Of a stretch of DNA of 40,482 bases, positions 1,401 to 17,846 are shown piece by piece. The notes beneath the pieces are model-generated. The model did not search any database, was not told the origin of the DNA, and was given only the letters and a program-made list of their open reading frames with translations. The position numbers and the translations under genes are program-made. Each line of letters starts with the position of its first letter. The stretch's first letter is position 1. Origin of the DNA: Pelomyxa schiedti (lineage: Eukaryota; Protista; Evosea); assembly GCA_020536535.1 (NCBI GenBank), contig JAHLWZ010000770.1:1-40482 (forward strand), read 5' to 3'.

Positions 1401-2962
1401 ATGCAAGGCGCAGAAGAACACGGTGCACCGACGCGGGAGTCGGGAGATGCAGGAGATGCGGTGTTGCCTCAAATACGACGGGGTGATGGTGGTGACACGG
1501 GACCTGGGACTACGAGGGCAACCGAGCCAACAATAAAGAAGAGGAGGTCCGTAGTTGTTGCTGCCGAAGGTGGTGGTGATGCCACAACCACAACCACCAC
1601 AACAACACCAACAGCAGCAGGGCCCGCGTCCACTGCATCCGCTTCGGTGTCGCGGTCACAGGACCCGAGCGTCACCACCATCACGCCGGGAGGAGCAAGT
1701 ACATCGGGATGTTGTGCAGCAACAAGTGGCGCGACGGAAGTTACTGCTGATGGCACGACGAATGAGGGTGGACGCAAAACCAGTGCTGCTGCGGCTCCTC
1801 AGAAATTTAAACCTGCACGCCCACCAATGTTGGCAGTACGATCTTTTACTTTTTTTTTTTTTTTTTTGTTTTGTTTTGTTTTGTTTTGTTTGTTCTGTTT
1901 GTTTTGTTTCTTATTACCCTCTTTCCTTTTTTTATGTATGGTTGGGACCTAATTACCATTTGGTAAACATTGCAGAAGCACACGCAGCTGTTTTACAACA
2001 CCAAGGAGAATCCAAGGGGCTTTATTATAACACACCAAGTAAGTCGAGGTGCTCAGGCTGTGAGTGAGTGCTCCCAAATGTTGACCCGTGTTTTGGTGAA
2101 AATGCAATCCCAAAGTACTACATGTGCAGAACTGCAGCCATCAACATCTGAAACATCAAATACAACCACACCTACACCCACTACCACTGCGACAACTTCC
2201 AGTAGTGCGCCGCCACCTTCAACTGCGGCAAATACAACTATTGATTCACCCCTTGACTCAACAACAACACACGGCCGCAAGTTTCAGGCAATCCTTTTTA
2301 TTCCTCCTCCATTTCCACCTAACTGTTCAAGGGCTTTAGTTCTGCCACAGTGGAGTTGAAGGAAAACTTGGAATTCGAATTATTGACAAAGCACTAGACC
2401 CTGTTGTTCTTCTGCATGCCTTGTTTGAGGATATAGCCGCAAACCCCAAAGAGTATAAAATGTATGAATCATCGCCAGCACTCTCAATCAAACCGTTCAC
2501 CATAAAGACAGAAAGGTTTGCTGCAGGATGTATCCTGCACAATCCTTTGTTGCTGCCACGAAAACAACTATTCTCGAAGCTGCTGGCAAACTCATAGCCA
2601 ATCATTTCACTGAGACTCCAGAGACGGTTTTTTTCCCTTTTGTTTGTGTTTTCTTTCACTGAAACTTCCCAGTTTGGCATTCTCTATGACTGCCGAAACA
2701 ATGAATCGTTTGAAAAAAAAGACATGATCGACAGTATTGCCAAATTGGTACCGCCATTGCACAAAGTTGATCTGGCCAATCCATCCTCCACTATCCTAGT
2801 CACTGTGCGTAACACAAATTCAGTCAACTGTATTAAAACGCACCTCAGGTGTCGAAATCGGCATGTGGAATAGGCATTGTGAGAGACTTCAAGCAATGGT
2901 GCAAATACAACGTACAGGAGATTGCCAAAAAGCTCCCACCCCCACCAACCAAAAAGCCCTAA
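1401..2962 (+). CDS. THUMPD1: THUMP-domain protein (THUMPD1/Tan1-like), copy 1, spliced, Thr/Ser-rich N-terminus
   Basis: RKFQFCHSGVEG, LDPVVLLHALFEDI, CRMYP, FGILYDCRNN, HKVDLANPSSTILVTVSKSACGIGIVRDF and KYNVQEI after splicing. Confidence 0.85.
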
Positions 2963-3051
2963 AAACAGCCCACTTCACAAAATCAAGTTCTTGTTTTTGG
3001 TAACAAAAGGGGCCAAATACTGTGTTTAATACAATGTTGGTGTGGTGCCAC

Positions 3052-3674
3052 TCAGGAATCCCCGGAAGCCCTTTTGCCGCGAATTTGCCCGAGCATTGCA
3101 TCCACAGCAGGCCGCCGTTCAAAGCACCTCTGCAGCGCCTCCCTGTCTGATGCAATCTGCTGCAAATAGCCCGTGATTAGTCCCACGAGTGCTTCTGAGA
3201 GTTCACTATCACTCGCCGTTTGTGCGCCGGTTCCAGTTGTTGCTGTTGCTGCTGCTGCTGCTGTGGTTGGTGGTGGTTCTAATGATGCCGAGGATGAGGC
3301 CGGTGCAGCGGGAAGAGCCTTTTTCAGTAGAGGGGCGACTGACTTTGGCAGGCCGGTGTTGGATGTGAGAGACGGAGGGATGAGGGTGACGCCGGATGAA
3401 GTCAAAAGCTGCGAGAAGGGAGTGCTCATTTCGCGGCCGACATGAAGGTCCATGTCAAGCAGGCTTTTGTAGCCCTTGTCCCATATACAAGGAGGGCCAG
3501 GCCCCGGCGCAAGCCGGTGATACACTGATTGGTATCCATGTTCTAGGAGCATCAGTGCCCTTTTCAGTAATAGGCACTTATCTCGGCCGGATGAAACATC
3601 TCCTTGGAGCTGAATATCTGTACCACAAAGGTAAGATTGCAAATGTTGATTTCAAGGAGGGTGGTACCTGTTGG
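3052..3674 (-). CDS. 3' part of ADP-ribosylglycohydrolase gene, copy 1 (cut by the gap)
   Basis: Closely similar to the last exon and intron of the ARH gene at 15876-16498. Confidence 0.85.
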
Positions 3675-8150: not shown

Positions 8151-8519
8151 AGATGGGGTTGTTGGTGGAATCAACTTTGAAAAGACTGATATTTTATGCA
8201 CAAACCTTGAAGATGAGTTTTTTTTTTTTATAGTGGTACATCATTTCACACATCCACTTCAATCTATGGAGAATGGGTGAGTGAGGATGAATTTTGAAAC
8301 TTCACAGACTAGACGTTGCTAGATATCCCTGACGAAGTATTGGCAGAGTATCAACAGAAGAAGAAAAATTGGAAGACGATTGGGGAGCCAAATATTCAGT
8401 GTGGTTGACATCCAGAGGGTAGGAAATGGGAAGCATCGACGCAGTGTTATTATTTGCAAGTTGAAATGTAGCGGAACCTTCAGTGGTCGTTTTGAAAAAA
8501 TAGATGTTTTCAGTCCAAT

Positions 8520-9443
8520 ACTTGGCCTCATCAATGGTTACCTGCAATAAATTGCTGTTCCGATTCCGGTTATTGGTCCTGATACTGGAAGATGCAGATG
8601 CAGACACAGAATCCACTTTTGGTGTTGATGCCGATGTTGCGGTTTTATTGCTGCTGGTACTGGCACTGGTACTGGTACTGGTACTGCTATCTTCATCATT
8701 GGCACTGACAGGGGGGTCGCGGTACACAACCCAGTCAATGAACTGTGACCCGTCGTGCGCCTGCCGCGAAGAGGGCGCGAGGTTGGGCCTCCAGCCACGG
8801 AACGTGGAGAACTTGCACCCGTTGTCCTCGCGTCTCTGGGCCTCGGTCCACGTGTCACCGAATCCCTCAGTGCACAGAAAGGAGCACACGGCCTCGCGGG
8901 TCTTGATCGTGTTCATGTCCCCGACCAGTATGTTCACGCAGTCCCGGCATTCCGGCACCTGCAGAATTAACGCGGTTAATTTGGAATGATGGGAACGGAA
9001 AAAGGAAAAGGGAAAGGGGGAATGAAGCCGTACTTGCTGCATCATCTGTACAACGACTCTCAGCAACGGGAACGTGGGAACGAGGCAAGCCACTGTTGTT
9101 GTCAGGCCCCTCAGCTTCAACCGCGTCAAAGCGGGCCCAAGTTACCATCCTAGGCAAAGCCGATTTCCAGCTGCTGGAACCAGGAACATCAGGAGTCTCA
9201 GACAACCAGAAATCACCATGTGCCCCACTCTTGTTCCCAGTCCCAGTCCCATTATTTTGATTCGCAGTCCCAGTCTCCCTGCTGGACACACAGCACGGCG
9301 GGCCTGTGCCTCCTCAGGAGGGCCAGCGCCACGTCGCATCTGTTGCCGTTTTCGTCGTCCGCTGCGTTGGCGGACCTCAGGTTGAACGTCATCACGCTCA
9401 CCTCCGCCGCGGTGCTATTTACGGGTGTCACCGCCGCACTCAT
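8520..9443 (-). pseudogene. Endonuclease/exonuclease/phosphatase (EEP) family gene, probably defective
   Basis: VMTFNLR, GDFWLSETPDVPGS..W..ALPRMVTWARF, ILVGDMN and IDWV are present. The segment after QQG, the NTH motif and the terminal SDH were not found, and the frames are not joined by obvious introns. Confidence 0.7.
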
Positions 9444-9553
9444 TCGCCTTAATTTCGGTGTTTGATCGATGTTCTGTGCCGAACCGAATCAGATCGAATC
9501 AAATTAAGGCAACGATTGTTTTACCCTCGGCCATTCACTTCAGGTTGCGGCAT

Positions 9554-12254
9554 TTACGGTAAGGGCTTGGGAGGCTGAGGGTGTTGTGCCTGGGTTGTTG
9601 AAGATTCAGAAGCTTGTGTTGTTGTTTCCGTCGCCGGTGCCTTGGGTATGGTTGCGGTTGGTTTTGCTGTTGAACTTGGTGCCGGCATGGGCAGTATTGC
9701 TGAACTTGGTGCCTTTACTGGTGTATCTGTTGGTGGCTTGGATGTTGCTGTTGCTGTTGTTGCCTGCTTGGGTGTTGTATTTGAAATTGATGCCTTGGAT
9801 ATTGTCTGCGCTTTTGTTGATATCTGTGTTGGTGGCGTGGCTGTTGTCTGTGCCTTTGTTGGTGTCTGTGCCTTAGGAGGTACCGTTTGTGGCTGTGGCT
9901 TGGTCCTTGGTTGCTGTGGCACAGGGGGCGGCCCTGCTGCTGCTGCCGCTGCTTGGCTTGATGCCTGCTGCAGCACATTAATTAATTAATTACTATGGCT
10001 ACTAACACTTAGATCATTTGCTGGGTGGGCATACCGAAACGTTGCTGATAATTGTTTGGTTCGCTGTAATGCGAGCTGCTGTAAGTTTTGTATACAGGTG
10101 GAATAGGTCACATATCGAGCGGCGGTATGCCTCACTGAGACTCAGAGTGTCCAGCACCATTTCAGAAGGCAACTCCCCTGTGCCATTCACCACGTTCGAA
10201 ACCTCAGGCAGTGCTTCTATAAGAAATATGAATGGTTACCAATACTGGTGGAGCAACGGAAAAAGATTGTACCTGCCAACTTCAGATCATTTAACCCCAA
10301 GGCCTGAGACAGCATTTCTAAGTGGAAGGGTCACTAACACACAAGAAACAAAGAAACAAAAAGAAAAACACAGGGCAGGAAATACCTGTTAAATGTTTCG
10401 CAACTTGCCCTAGCTTGGCACATTGGATAAGAGGTGATGTTTGTGGGAGCTGTGCGGAAACGACCCCGATTTGATGATGATGAATCGGGCCTTGTTGTCC
10501 AGTCTCCTCCTCCTCGTCAAGTATAATTTCATTTGGATCTTTGTATGCTGCCGGACTTTCGGTGTTGTTTCCTCCTCCTACGTTTTTCCCCATTTGGCAT
10601 TAGTTTTGTGCACTGACGGAATGTGTTGGAGAAGTACCTTCATCCAGTATGATCATCTCACTGGGATCTTTGTATGCGGCCGGACTTTCGGCATTGTCTC
10701 CTCCTACTTCTCCGTCAGTGGCACAAAACTGATACAGATGTGGGGAAAAAGTACCCATTATTGGTGATCCAAAGTTTGATGAAACTGAGGCACCGCCAAG
10801 ACCTGCCTCCTCCTCACTTCCACTACCTGATGCTGAAGAATCCTCATCAGAAGATGATGAAGAGTTGCCGGAACATTCACCCGACGACTCGTTCTTGGTG
10901 GATGACTCAGATGATGGCTCAGACCGATTAAAAGGTGGAGGTACAGCGTCGGTTTCGGTGTTATTGTCAGTGTCAGTGTCAGTGTCAGTGTAGTTCGAGG
11001 TCGCGGGGGTGATCCGAGACTTTCTAACCGCGTCCCAGCTCCGTTCTAGTTGTGGCCAAATAAGGAAAGGTAAAGAATCTCTATGAAATGGTACTTATTG
11101 CGGATAAAATTCGTTTTGTATGAGGTTCCATAGGCGGTCGTGGTATGATTAGAGGTACAACTCTCCTCTTATGTAACTTCCTCAAGTTCGCTTGCGAAGG
11201 TGATTTTGCGGTGCTACTGCTTTTTGTTTGTGTGGACTTGGGGAGTCTGTCCATTATGGTAGTGGAAGAAGCTCCTTCCGTAATAATAGTACACAGGGGC
11301 AGTTGTAGTGCTGCCGTGTGGTGGCCATTGTCATCGGTAATCATAGGCGTGGAGGTTACATTGACATTACTTGCAGCAGAATTTGTTTCTCCGTCACCTC
11401 CACCTCCTCCTGCACCACTTGCAACAACACCCCCGCTTACACCACTTGCATCTCCAATTGTTCCAATTCCAGCTGCTGCAGAAGTAGTTCTGGAGGTGGT
11501 GACGACTGCAGGCTCACGTAATAACATGCTGCTCAAGTTCGACTGCAAAGGTGATGGCGATGATGAACTGCTTGTTGTACCAGTACTAGCACCGCCACCA
11601 CCACCACAAGTGAGGTCGCTTCTTTGCGTTGATTTGTCCAGCGGTAGCACTTTCGCGTTGTCATCACTCATTTCACTCATTGCTTGCTTGACGGGCTCCT
11701 CTTCTAGTACAATGGTTAGTGGAGGAGAAATGGAGAAACGAGAGGAGAAAAGAGTGAAAGGAAACCAGAAAAGAAAGGAAAAGAAATGGAGAAATGGTTA
11801 CTATTATTAATAAACAAATACCTGAGCCAATTCCAAATGAACTTGCTGTTTTTATCTTTCGTGTAGCGAGAGTGCTGTTTGATGCTGTGATACTGCCCGT
11901 TGTTTGTCCGAGCACAGCACCAACGCCATCCCCAATCCCACTCCCTCCTGTGGGTGATGCTATTTGTGGGATAACGGCGGACGTTGCAGTTGTAGACGAT
12001 GCAGTGACGTCATTTGTTAGTTTCGGCGATGAAGTGATTGTGTTGCTGTTGTCGGCTACTAGCTGCTGTGTTGTTGCGGTTGCTGTTGCGCGTTGGCGGC
12101 AACGCTTCGCCGAAACTTTTTCCGCGCCCTCGGGCGGGTTGTTTGCTTTCCGGGTGAGTGGCGTGATCATGGTGTAGACGTCAGGCAAGAGGTGCCTCTT
12201 AGAGCCACGCGGAAGAGACTGTCTGGTCGGTATTGTTGGGTATCGGTAGCTCAT
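9554..12254 (-). CDS. Hypothetical low-complexity S/T/P-rich protein, multi-exon
   Basis: ORFs 11673-12254, 11081-11680, ~10755-11050, 10318-10593 and 9554-9976 can be joined in frame through short GT-AG introns. Contains a duplicated ESPAAYKDP[SN]E.IILDE motif. Confidence 0.7.
10578..10754 (-). repeat. Pair of mutually inverted introns flanking a 66-nt duplicated exon
   Basis: Intron 10704-10754 is the near reverse complement of intron 10578-10637. Exon 10638-10703 repeats the start of the next exon. Confidence 0.9.
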
Positions 12255-14135: not shown

Positions 14136-15719
14136 ATGCAGGAGAAGCCGAAGTCGGGAGACCCAGGAGAGCCCGTGTTGCCTCAAATACGACGGGGGGC
14201 TACGACGTGTGATGGTGGAGTCACATCAGGGACTACGAGGGCAACTGAGCCAACAATAAAGAAGAGGAGGTCCGTCGTTGTTACCGCAGCTGAAGGTGGC
14301 GGCGGTGATGTCACCACAACATCAGCAGAGCCCCCGTCCCCTGCATCCACGTCGGTATCGTCGCCGTCGCCGTCGCCATCGCCATCGCCGATGCCGGAAG
14401 GAGCAAGTACATCGGGATACTGTGTCGCAACAACAACGGCCGCGACGGCAGTTGCTGCTGATGGAACGACGATTGAAGGCGAACGCAAAACCACTGCTGC
14501 TGCGGTTCCTAAGAAATTTAAACCTGCACGCCCACCAATGTTGGCAGTACGACCTTTTACCTTTTTTTTTTTTTTTTTTTTTTTGGTTTGCTTTGCTTTG
14601 CTTTGGTTTGTTTCTGATTACCCTCCTCATTCTGGAACCTAATTGCCATTTGGTAAACATTGCAGAAGCACACGCAGCTGTTTTACAACACCAATGAGAA
14701 TCCAAGGGGCCTTATTATAACACACCAAGTAAGTCGAGGTGCTCAAGCCGTGAGTGAGTGCTCCCAAATGTTGACCCATGTTTTGGCAAAAATGCAATCC
14801 CAAAGTACTACATGCGCAGAACCTACCATAAATTCCACTTATGCTTCTCTCTCAACACCGATTTCTGCTTCCTCTGCAACTCCAGCTGTCACTTCCTTAC
14901 TGCAGACATCAACATCTGAAGCCTCAAATACAACCACACCTGCACCCACTACCACTACTACAACTTCCAGTAGTGCTCCACCACCTCCAACTGCGGCAAA
15001 TGCAACTGTTGATTCATCACTTGACTCAACAACACACTGCCGCAAGTTTCAGGCAATCCTTTTTATTCCTACTCCATTTCCTCACTGTTCAAGGGCTTTA
15101 GTTCTGCCACAGTGGAGTTGAAGGAAAACTCGGAATTCGAATTCTTGACAAAGCAGTAGACCCTGTTGTTCTTCTGCATGCCTTGTTTGAGGATATAGCC
15201 ACAAACCCCAAAGAGTATAAAATGTATGAATCATCACCAGCACTCTCAATCAAACCGTTCACCATCAAGACAGAAAGGTTTGCTGCAGGATGTATCCTGC
15301 ACAATCCTTTGTGGCTGCCACAAAAACAACTATTCTCGAAGCTGCTGGCAAACTCATAGCAAATCATTTCACGGAGACCCCAGAAACGGTTTTTTTCCCT
15401 TTTGTTTGTGTTTTCTTTCACTGAAACTTCCCAGTTTGGCATTCTCTATGACTGCCGAAACAACGAATCGTTTGAAAGAAAAGACATGATCGACAGCATT
15501 GCCAAATTGGTACCGCCAATACACAAAGTTGAGCTGTCCAATCCATCCTCCACTATCCTTGTAACGGTATGTAGCACAAATTCAGTCAACCATTGTAAAA
15601 CACAACTTCAGGTGTCAAAATCAGCATGTGGAATAGGTATTGTGAGAGATTTCAAGCAATGGTGCAAATACAATGTACAGGAGATTGCCAAAACGCACCC
15701 ACCAACCAAAAAGCCCTAA
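14136..15719 (+). CDS. THUMPD1: THUMP-domain protein, copy 2
   Basis: Same exon structure and motifs as 1401-2962, with an extra S/T-rich insertion near 14822-14900. Confidence 0.85.
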
Positions 15720-15875
15720 AAGCAAAACCAAACACCTCACACTTTGAGGAAAAGAAGGAATTGAAAATCAACTCTTATTTTTTTCTTTTCTGCTCCACAA
15801 TGGAAGCCAAAGAGTGAGCCTATACAATGGCACAAACCAATGTGGCTGGGAGACATGTGGGTCCATCCCACTCAT

Positions 15876-17846
15876 TCATGAATCCCCTGAAGGCCTTTTA
15901 CTGCGAATTTGGCCGAGCATGGCATCCACAGCAGGGCGCCTTTCAAAACACCTCTGTAGCGCCTCCCTGTCCGATGCAATCTGCTGCAGATAGCCCGTGA
16001 TTAGTCCCACAAGTGCTTCCGAGAGTTCGCCATCACTCGCCGTTTGTGCACCGGTTCCAGTTGTCGTGGTTGTTGTTGCTACTGTTGTGGTTGTTGGTGG
16101 TTCTGATGATGCCGAGGATGAGGCCGGTGCAACAGGAAGAGCCTTTTTCAGTAGAGGGGCGACTGACTTTGGCAGTCCGGTGTTGGATGTGAGAGACGGA
16201 GGGATGAGGGTGACGCCGGATGAAGCCAAAAGCTGCGAGAAGGGAGTGCTCATTTCCCGGCCGACATGAAGGTCCATGTCAAGCAGGCTTTTGTAGCCCT
16301 TGTCCCATATACAAGGAGGGCCAGGCCCCGGTGCAAGCCGGTGATACACTGATTGGTATCCATGTTCTAGGAGCATTAGTGCCCTTTTCAGTAATAGGCA
16401 CTTATCTCGGCCGGATGAAACATCTCCTTGGAGCTGAATATCTGTACCACAAAGGTAAGATTGCAAATGTTGATTTCAAGGAGGGTGGTACCTGTTGGAT
16501 TCCGCCCAAGCAAAGAGAGGGAGTGAAGTTGTGAACCCCACATCTCAATTAACTTGGAGAATACAAGTTTTGCTCTCCACTCTTTCGGGATGCCATTGAG
16601 TCCATAGTAGGCACCTGCGAGCTGTCCATACACCGCAGCTACTGTGTCAGCATCATCTCCAAGGTTTGACACAAGGAGGCAGCCCTCTCTGAATGAATTG
16701 GTTTTATAGAATCCCCAAAGTGCTGCCTCTAGGGTTAAGTGTGCTTTCCCCCGGGCAACAATCTCGGGAGGTTCCTTGACCTTAAAGTCTAGTTACTAAA
16801 TTGCCCAAAAGGGAGCTTAAACAGACTTGCCTTATATGATCCAGTGGCAATGGAAGCAATCAATGGGTCTAGAGGTTTTTCGGACCAATAGTTTGGCGAA
16901 ACACCATCAGGAACAAAGATGTGCGTTGTATCAAGAAGTTGTTCCTTTGTGGCCCCATTTATTGCCCCGACAATTAGAGCTGCTAGGTACCTACAAGCAT
17001 CCACGCACGCAATGTTACCATGGGTAGCAGTGGATGAAGACCCAGCTAATTTCGAGATTATTTCATTTGAGTGATTTGCCAAGTAGTGATTACCGTGTGC
17101 TATAGCAAGTTGCGGATTGAACGAAAATGCAATAGGTACGGGTGCAAGTCTCATTATAGAGCCATTTCCCTGTCCCTTATGCTCAGGGGAGGCAAGTTCC
17201 CCAGTAGCTTGAAATCTTTTTCATATAAATCCGGCACATTTTAGTGTGGTAATTTCACAAGGAAGAAGTACTTTTGTATGGAAGTGAGACAAGTCGAACC
17301 TATTGATGGTCACAAGGGATAAAATGACAGTACATTGGACCCACCAATATCAAAACGCCTTCCATTGCTGCTGAGATGAGAATGATCGTTCCACTCACAA
17401 TACCTAATCCGTATGATTAATATAATCAATGCTACTTGCTATGGGAACTGTACCTTCTGCATTGGTCAGTAATATCACAAGTACCATTGAGCTCAATAAT
17501 GCTCTCTGCCAGGCACAATGCCATGGAAGTATCATCTGTAAACTTTTCTCCAATAAGAACTTCCATTCACCAGGCACCTTTTTTGTCCCACAACAAAAAA
17601 AACCACTGAGGAACAACAAACCTGACCAGGCAGTAACTTGAAGCAACCACCACCAACAATGTCAACCAGGGGTGAAAATGATCCAGGGTGTTGAAATTCA
17701 TTTGTAGTCCCAAGTGCATCACCAACTGCCAAACCAACAAGGGCTCCAACACCCCTTTCGCGATTGCTAGTCGTGACGTCAGCAGAGGCAACTGCGGAAC
17801 TCGTCGTTGTGCCGTTGCTGGCAGAAACGGCCGTTGTTGCCGACAT
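15876..17846 (-). CDS. ADP-ribosylglycohydrolase (DraG/ARH family) with a ~190-aa C-terminal extension
   Basis: [43 protein letters not shown] and [24 protein letters not shown]. Confidence 0.93.

Follow-up and report, generated by a model that had tools for sequence, protein, structure and literature searches.

How does a gene come to hold two neighbouring introns of which one is the reverse complement of the other, and does their complementarity affect the exon lying between them? This question is raised by Pelo_9757, a minus-strand gene of the protist Pelomyxa schiedti (Evosea), located at positions 9557..12254 of contig JAHLWZ010000770.1 (assembly GCA_020536535.1). The whole stretch analysed, positions 1 to 40,482 of the forward strand of this contig (40,482 nucleotides, nt), is referred to below as the window. 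A first-pass annotation made from the sequence alone had described the two introns and the 66-nt exon enclosed by them. It had proposed either an RNA-structure switch, acting through exon skipping or back-splicing, or a whole-intron inversion or bidirectional introner event enabled by near-palindromic intron ends. The answer best supported by our analysis is an evolutionary one: the intron sequence works in either orientation, and one of the two introns was probably made from its neighbour.

Sequence Relationship of the Two Introns

Read along the minus strand, the arrangement comprises the end of exon 3 (...ATGG), the first intron (I1, 10754-10704), the 66-nt segment (10703-10638), the second intron (I2, 10637-10578) and a longer exon. 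I1 (10704..10754, 51 nt) and I2 (10578..10637, 60 nt) both have the form GTAC..GTAG. Aligned with the reverse complement of I2, I1 matched it end to end, the exceptions being a 10-nt insertion specific to I2, AACACATTCC, and four indels of 1-2 nt. The global alignment score was 51, compared with 11.9 ± 3.9 for shuffled sequences (z = 10), and none of 1000 shuffles reached the observed value. The description of the introns as reverse complements differing mainly by an insertion of about 10 nt was thus correct.

Substitutions between the two arms numbered 3 among 47 aligned positions, all of them transitions, in addition to 5 indels. Two blocks, TAC(G)TTTTTCCCC and AGTTTTGTGC(C)ACTGACGGA, are the same in both arms except for a single-base indel in each, and the terminal GAAGTA is shared exactly. 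All three transitions and two small indels fall in a diverged middle part of about 10 nt. With only 66 nt separating I1 from I2, the pair shows the short-distance reverse-complement relationship of a template-switch mutation. Exactly two occurrences of the 19-20-nt core were found in the window (0 expected by chance), and the I1/I2 pair is the only substantial short-range inverted repeat of the window.

The ends of the introns proved less symmetrical than the first-pass annotation had assumed. Compared with its own reverse complement, each intron was at chance level (z = −0.15 and −0.53), and the intron ends able to pair cover only about 9 nt (TACTTYTYC / GGAGAAGTA), so that neither intron is significantly self-complementary. 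Both introns lie at homologous positions of the repeat unit (G|GAGGAG), with GG on each side. The repeats flanking them consist only of GG/AGG, and no target-site duplication longer than 2-3 nt was found.

A branch-like motif, CTGAC, is located 12 nt upstream of the 3' splice site in I1, and another, CTAAT, 22 nt upstream of the 3' splice site in I2. An in-frame TAA lies inside I2. Retention of the 51-nt I1, which has no in-frame stop, would add 17 residues and leave the frame intact.

Splicing of Both Introns and Inclusion of the Exon

Four public sequencing runs from one sample (X1-X4), none of them recorded as RNA, were used, and their contigs were aligned to positions 9560-12254. Contigs of the DNA runs X1, X2 and X3 matched the window over the whole unspliced arrangement with 0 differences. 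Run X4 yielded one contig of 2155 nt (depth 14) that omits seven segments, each bounded by CT..AC on the plus strand, corresponding to GT..AG on the minus strand. The omitted segments are located at 9968-10034, 10217-10272, 10318-10385, 10578-10637, 10704-10754, 11046-11094 and 11704-11821. We take X4 to be complementary DNA (cDNA) because a loose end of its contig resembles the Smart-seq template-switch oligo. A cDNA origin agrees with the Smart-seq2 transcriptome of the genome paper, in which the P. schiedti genome itself was obtained from single cells amplified with GenomiPhi (phi29) (PMC8887013).

I1 and I2 were both removed from the X4 contig precisely at the predicted sites, as is expected of spliceosomal introns, and the 66-nt exon between them was retained. 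Exon inclusion is therefore the assembled form of the transcript. The 10755>10577 junction that skipping would produce was not among the joints of the contig, a kind of assembly that drops rare isoforms. Nor did the contig show a back-splice joint, although poly(A)-primed Smart-seq2 cDNA cannot reveal circles. The gene model and the intron boundaries of the first-pass annotation were reproduced at exactly these coordinates, and of the two forms that it had suggested comparing, skip and inclusion, this one contig contained inclusion.

Predicted Folding of the Intron Pair

The RNA segment 10570-10762 was predicted to fold at −74 kcal/mol, compared with −46.3 ± 4.0 kcal/mol for shuffled sequences (z = −6.9), and cofolding of I1 and I2 alone gave −53 kcal/mol. 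The predicted stem pairs the outer splice sites with each other and, at the inner sites, the 3' end of I1 with the 5' end of I2. The earlier expectation that the inner splice sites can pair and the outer ones are brought together was thus confirmed at the level of the predicted fold. The arms, at 51 and 60 nt, also reach the length of at least 30-40 nt looked for in complementary flanking repeats that lead to circular RNA or looping-out.

Relative Age of the Exon Duplication and the Intron Pair

The exon enclosed by the two introns, exon 4 (10638..10703, minus strand, 66 nt, phase 1-1), is present in the cDNA contig and makes up the hairpin loop in the predicted fold. It carries the first copy of a peptide motif, (G)GDNAESPAAYKDPSEMIILDE. 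The second copy, GGGNNTESPAAYKDPNEIILDEEEE, occupies the first ~69 nt of exon 5 (10386..10577, minus strand, 192 nt, phase 1-1). Exon 4 and the start of exon 5 share 82% DNA identity in direct orientation, and both copies encode ESPAAYKDP[S/N]E(M)IILDE. The size and phase of the enclosed exon and its direct repetition at the start of the next one, as first described, were confirmed by this identity and by translation. The two exons are adjacent and homologous, with the same phase 1, the same frame and the same motif, which is the pattern of a tandem exon duplication. The copies are not mutually exclusive, since both are present in one cDNA contig and in the annotated protein. Skipping of exon 4 would preserve the frame and leave one motif copy.

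Across 18 aligned codons, 8 of 10.8 synonymous sites differ between the exon copies (proportion of synonymous differences, pS, 0.74, saturated), but only 2 of 43.2 non-synonymous sites do (proportion of non-synonymous differences, pN, 0.046). Judged by these proportions, the motif was duplicated long ago and purifying selection acts on the protein sequence of both copies, which speaks for normal translation of the 66-nt exon. Divergence between the intron arms, at 3 substitutions in 47 positions, is much lower than at the synonymous sites of the exon pair (Fisher's test, p = 1.2e-5). Either the arms arose long after the exon duplication, then, or their complementarity has been maintained. Provided that divergence has been neutral, the intron pair is not of the same age as the exon pair.

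Copy Number of the Intron Sequence

The genome was searched for more copies of the intron, a check that the first-pass annotation had proposed, and only the two known copies were recovered. No further copy was found in the 52.4-Mb assembly by the exact 19-20-nt core, by a gapped pattern of ends plus core, by BLAST with I2 or by a profile. The profile, a sequence-only covariance model of the two copies, recovered both of them (E = 9e-14 and 3e-10), and its next best match had an E value of 0.2. BLAST with the 60-nt I2 missed I1 itself, so it is insensitive here. For the end motifs, the 5' 15-mer (at most 1 mismatch) gave 27 matches versus 13 for the control, a roughly twofold ratio as for a generic intron start of GTAC followed by pyrimidines, and the 3' 17-mer (at most 2 mismatches) gave 17 matches versus 25 for the control, showing no enrichment. 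Because only two copies occur in the assembly, membership of an introner family is not supported by these searches.

A seed-and-align scan for adjacent inverted repeats covered the window and 200 kb beyond it, a sample too small for an estimate of genome frequency. The I1/I2 pair scored 49 and was the top short-range inverted repeat of the window. The 200 kb beyond it contained one other compact pair with a score of 48, at positions 308-350 and 756-799 of contig C231 (locus L030). Its 43-nt arms are ~80% alike, lie 405 nt apart near a contig end and are not obviously introns; they could be the termini of a small foldback element or one resembling a miniature inverted-repeat transposable element (MITE). 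The rest of the matches in the 200 kb were long, low-identity and GC-rich compositional ones, one of which scored 50. One mononucleotide-shuffled copy per stretch gave a single match, with a score of 41.

Polarity of the Introns and Proposed History

The two introns differ in how well they conform to the other introns of the gene. The pyrimidine fraction was 0.57 in I1 and 0.43 in I2, the lowest of the seven introns; the other five had fractions of 0.68-0.79, apart from one of the five at 0.48. Over the 20 nt of I2 that adjoin its 3' splice site, the fraction was 0.25. With each of the remaining five introns, I1 gave the better alignment in sense orientation, and I2 in antisense orientation (5 of 5 comparisons). 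Because of its low pyrimidine content and better antisense alignment, I2 is probably the derived antisense copy of a normal intron. I1, which has normal intron polarity, is the likely source. We infer this direction from the seven introns of one gene.

We regard it as moderately probable that I2 arose as a local inverted copy, through template switching or repair synthesis and without a mobile element, and that the copy was tolerated by splicing. Short template switching is, according to three reports (PMC5453318, PMC8794818, PMC8604942), a documented source of nearby inverted copies, of arm homogenisation and of RNA hairpins formed in one step. The whole-intron inversion envisaged in the first-pass annotation holds in a form close to this explanation, refined by the finding that much less divergence has accumulated between the arms than at synonymous sites of the exon copies.

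The proposed history would begin with an old in-frame tandem duplication of the acidic motif ESPAAYKDPxE-IILDE, both copies of which would have been kept by selection on the protein. The duplication may have been mediated by GAGGAG(G)AC repeats bounding the unit, and an intron was possibly included in it. Much later, a strand switch would have put the reverse complement of I1, located ~120 bp away, at the junction of the units, by template switching during replication or by repair synthesis on the opposite strand. This event would have either created I2 or overwritten an older intron at the same place. In direct orientation, the first 17 nt of I2 and I1 are alike at 13 of 17 positions, a similarity that may be a weak hint of such an older intron or may represent a generic intron start.

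Three features would explain why the inverted copy still works as an intron. A core of the form TAC...GTA with an outer G on both sides would regenerate GT..AG after inversion, and a YTRAY-like motif on both strands (CTGAC one way, CTGAT/CTAAT the other) would stand at a workable distance from the 3' splice site. These introns of ~50-60 nt seem to need little else, and the missing pyrimidine tract of I2 apparently does not block splicing. The full hairpin would bury four splice sites. Because the messenger RNA (mRNA) is correctly spliced, the hairpin presumably forms rarely, I1 being removed co-transcriptionally before I2 exists.

Several points weigh against this history. The transcript evidence consists of one assembled contig of single-cell cDNA. 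The gene is without detectable relatives and hence has no outgroup among the reachable databases, so that the ancestral state, the direction of copying and its date are accessible only by inference. The arms would likewise stay alike if their pairing were selected or if conversion took place between them, and their similarity does not by itself prove recency. The ratio of 5 indels to 3 substitutions is odd for plain neutral decay, and no clear microhomology was found at the switch points. Finally, the exactly homologous intron positions (G|GAGGAG) would require that an intron already occupied the I2 site or that such sites are preferred.

Alternative Explanations

The pairing itself could be what has been selected. 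Under this explanation, which we consider possible but unlikely, the introns are kept complementary as a functional RNA bridge. Its stem of ~50 bp, looping out the in-frame exon and containing all four splice sites, would lead in a fraction of the transcripts to exon skipping, with one motif copy left, to back-splice circularisation or to unspliced retention. The strong predicted stem, the better conservation of the arms relative to the synonymous sites of the exon pair, the grouping of the arm differences into a single internal loop and a single bulge, and the symmetric phase 1-1 of the exon, which makes skipping frame-neutral, are all consistent with it. Miniature introns with inverted repeats of 30-40 nt suffice for exon circularisation in animal cells, according to one study (PMC4201285). 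Set against this, the sole transcript contig includes the exon without a skip junction among its joints, and the strong purifying selection on both motif copies indicates that the exon is normally translated. Moreover, only one of the three arm substitutions is wobble-compatible, splicing of I1 can precede the transcription of I2, and there is no orthologue that could reveal covariation. The more specific proposal that a selected whole-intron bridge loops out the 66-nt exon, and thereby sets the ratio of one-motif to two-motif protein or makes a tiny circular RNA, appears more doubtful still. A regulatory meaning, be it a structure switch or a circular RNA, is not supported by the data at hand.

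Two explanations retain an inversion or insertion of DNA by other routes. The introns could derive from a small mobile element that generates introns (an introner or MITE), inserted twice independently in opposite orientations; such an element would have G|GAGGAG-like sites as its target and be spliceable either way round. The shared context and GG flanks of both introns and the branch-like motifs on both strands fit this account, and opposite-orientation introner insertions are a recognised category (PMC9860276). We nevertheless judge it improbable, as a third copy was missing from the assembly, the 5' end motif was only about twice as frequent as its control and the 3' motif was not enriched, terminal inverted repeats were not above chance in either intron, and any target-site duplication is limited to 2-3 nt. 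The bidirectional introner suggested in the first-pass annotation was therefore not borne out. Alternatively, one member of an old tandem [intron+exon] duplication could have been inverted in place, with later gene conversion between the arms. Duplication of an intron together with its exon would explain the homologous intron positions and phase, the direct likeness of the I2 and I1 starts is what the remnant of a direct copy would give, and, according to the yeast study (PMC8604942), short inverted repeats between which template switching occurs can have their spacer inverted and their arms made alike. However, 50-nt arms offer very little length for repeated gene conversion, the 17-nt likeness in direct orientation may simply be that of a generic GTAC plus pyrimidine-rich start, and the arm imperfections are swapped between the introns, which means that the breakpoints must fall within 1 nt of both intron ends. 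In-place inversion is accordingly given a still lower probability. An artefact of phi29 amplification or of assembly would be conceivable for a genome obtained from GenomiPhi-amplified single cells (PMC8887013), since amplification yields inverted chimeras. Such chimeras are exact copies, whereas the arms here carry 3 substitutions and 5 indels; in addition, the three DNA runs give an identical arrangement, and the independent cDNA contig has both exon copies in order with precise splicing at both introns. A whole-genome-amplification chimera was rejected on these grounds, and we consider an artefact of any kind scarcely credible.

The Gene Pelo_9757 and Its Surroundings

Pelo_9757 consists of 8 exons and 7 introns (118, 49, 51, 60, 68, 56 and 67 nt), all junctions of which are present in the one cDNA contig, and encodes 743 amino acids. 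Exon-by-exon translations are identical to the public protein KAH3758431.1 (P0001), annotated as 'hypothetical protein Pelo_9757 [Pelomyxa schiedti]'. The protein is of low complexity and rich in Ser, Thr, Ala, Gly and Pro. Pfam, applied exon by exon, detected no family on any exon, and no paralogue was found in the genome. A HMMER search with exon 7 against 1.84 billion representatives returned only its own product and three spurious repeat proteins, a word search with residues 440-620 of P0001 returned only the protein itself, and the protein atlas offered no usable match for the product. An Rfam scan of 10300-11000 gave nothing relevant. As far as these searches reach, Pelo_9757 is an orphan.

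The cDNA contig ends at 12125 on the minus strand, whereas the annotated ATG, at 12254, lies 129 nt further upstream. The loose end at this position is presumably the Smart-seq template-switch oligo sequence. Either the transcript start and N-terminus of Pelo_9757 are mis-annotated, or the oligo primed internally. Exon 3 contains a (GACACT)n hexamer repeat (10958-10995, minus strand) that encodes TDTDTD and on which many unrelated contigs stack. The sole difference between cDNA and DNA in the gene, T>A at 10955, is located beside this repeat.

The downstream neighbour (8300-9480, minus strand) begins with MSAAVTPVNSTAAEVSVMTFNLRSANAADDENGNRCDVALALLRRHRPAVLCVQ and starts only ~80 nt past the stop codon of Pelo_9757. 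Its N-terminus may resemble the endonuclease/exonuclease/phosphatase type. Elsewhere in the window, a direct segmental duplication was found between 1438-3674 and 14152-16498, ~12.7 kb apart, in three blocks of 81-94% identity. In inverted orientation, positions 1-69 of the window match 2563-2631 exactly, and positions 1-74 match 15320-15393 at 93% identity. The exact copy (1-69), located at the contig end, could be an amplification chimera.

Significance and Comparison with Known Systems

The I1/I2 pair constitutes a natural experiment in which essentially the same sequence of ~50 nt is spliced in both orientations, at adjacent positions of one gene. This suggests that a short Pelomyxa intron needs little orientation-specific information: GTA at the start, a branch motif resembling YTRAY and TAG at the end would do, and a pyrimidine tract could be dispensed with. 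If I2 is a local inverted copy of I1, as we favour, the locus is a candidate for intron birth or replacement by such copying, which acts on DNA and differs from introner transposition as well as from reverse splicing. If instead the pairing were selected, structure-controlled exon choice or inverted-repeat circularisation would be extended to Amoebozoa in an unusually compact form. A true whole-intron bridge would represent a structure-controlled cassette exon whose pairing arms are complete introns, splice sites included. At present, the arrangement is best regarded as a well-documented curiosity in an orphan gene.

Among known phenomena, template-switch mutations are described by Loytynoja & Goldman 2017 (PMC5453318), Monttinen & Loytynoja 2022 (PMC8794818) and in the yeast inverted-repeat study (PMC8604942). 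As in the cases presented there, tens of nucleotides would have been replaced or inserted as the reverse complement of sequence ~100-200 bp away, with a hairpin arising in one step, clustered changes and indels. Unlike those mutations, the unit copied here is a complete spliceosomal intron, spliceable when inverted and placed at the next intron position of the gene. The mechanism proposed for Pelo_9757 also concerns a locus whose ancestral state cannot be reconstructed.

The resemblance to complementary introns that circularise an exon, as presented by Liang & Wilusz 2014 (PMC4201285), lies in inverted repeats longer than 30-40 nt that flank the exon and whose pairing joins its splice sites. 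In contrast to the systems covered there, in which repeats lie within long introns, the arms in Pelo_9757 are entire introns including four splice sites. The exon is 66 nt long and belongs to an amoebozoan protist, and the one cDNA contig shows no back-splice or skip product.

Related introns at different positions are likewise a feature of introners and symmetrical sister introns (Gozashti et al. 2022, PMC9860276; Fekete et al. 2021, PMC8469720). Opposite-orientation copies are allowed for in introner surveys (PMC9860276), and similarity to the reverse complement of the same intron is seen in some proliferating fungal introns (PMC8469720). Those systems are multi-copy, occupy unrelated genes and often have terminal inverted repeats of 45-55 nt or target-site duplications, whereas here two adjacent copies in one gene show no significant self-symmetry.

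Tandem exon duplication is matched by the adjacent homologous exons of the same phase with the same peptide motif. Unlike in mutually exclusive tandem exons, both copies are present in the mRNA, and the intervening intron is the reverse complement of the upstream intron rather than a direct copy of it. The locus can be viewed as a variation on three known phenomena, namely exons duplicated in tandem, short inverted copies made by template switching and flanking introns that are complementary.

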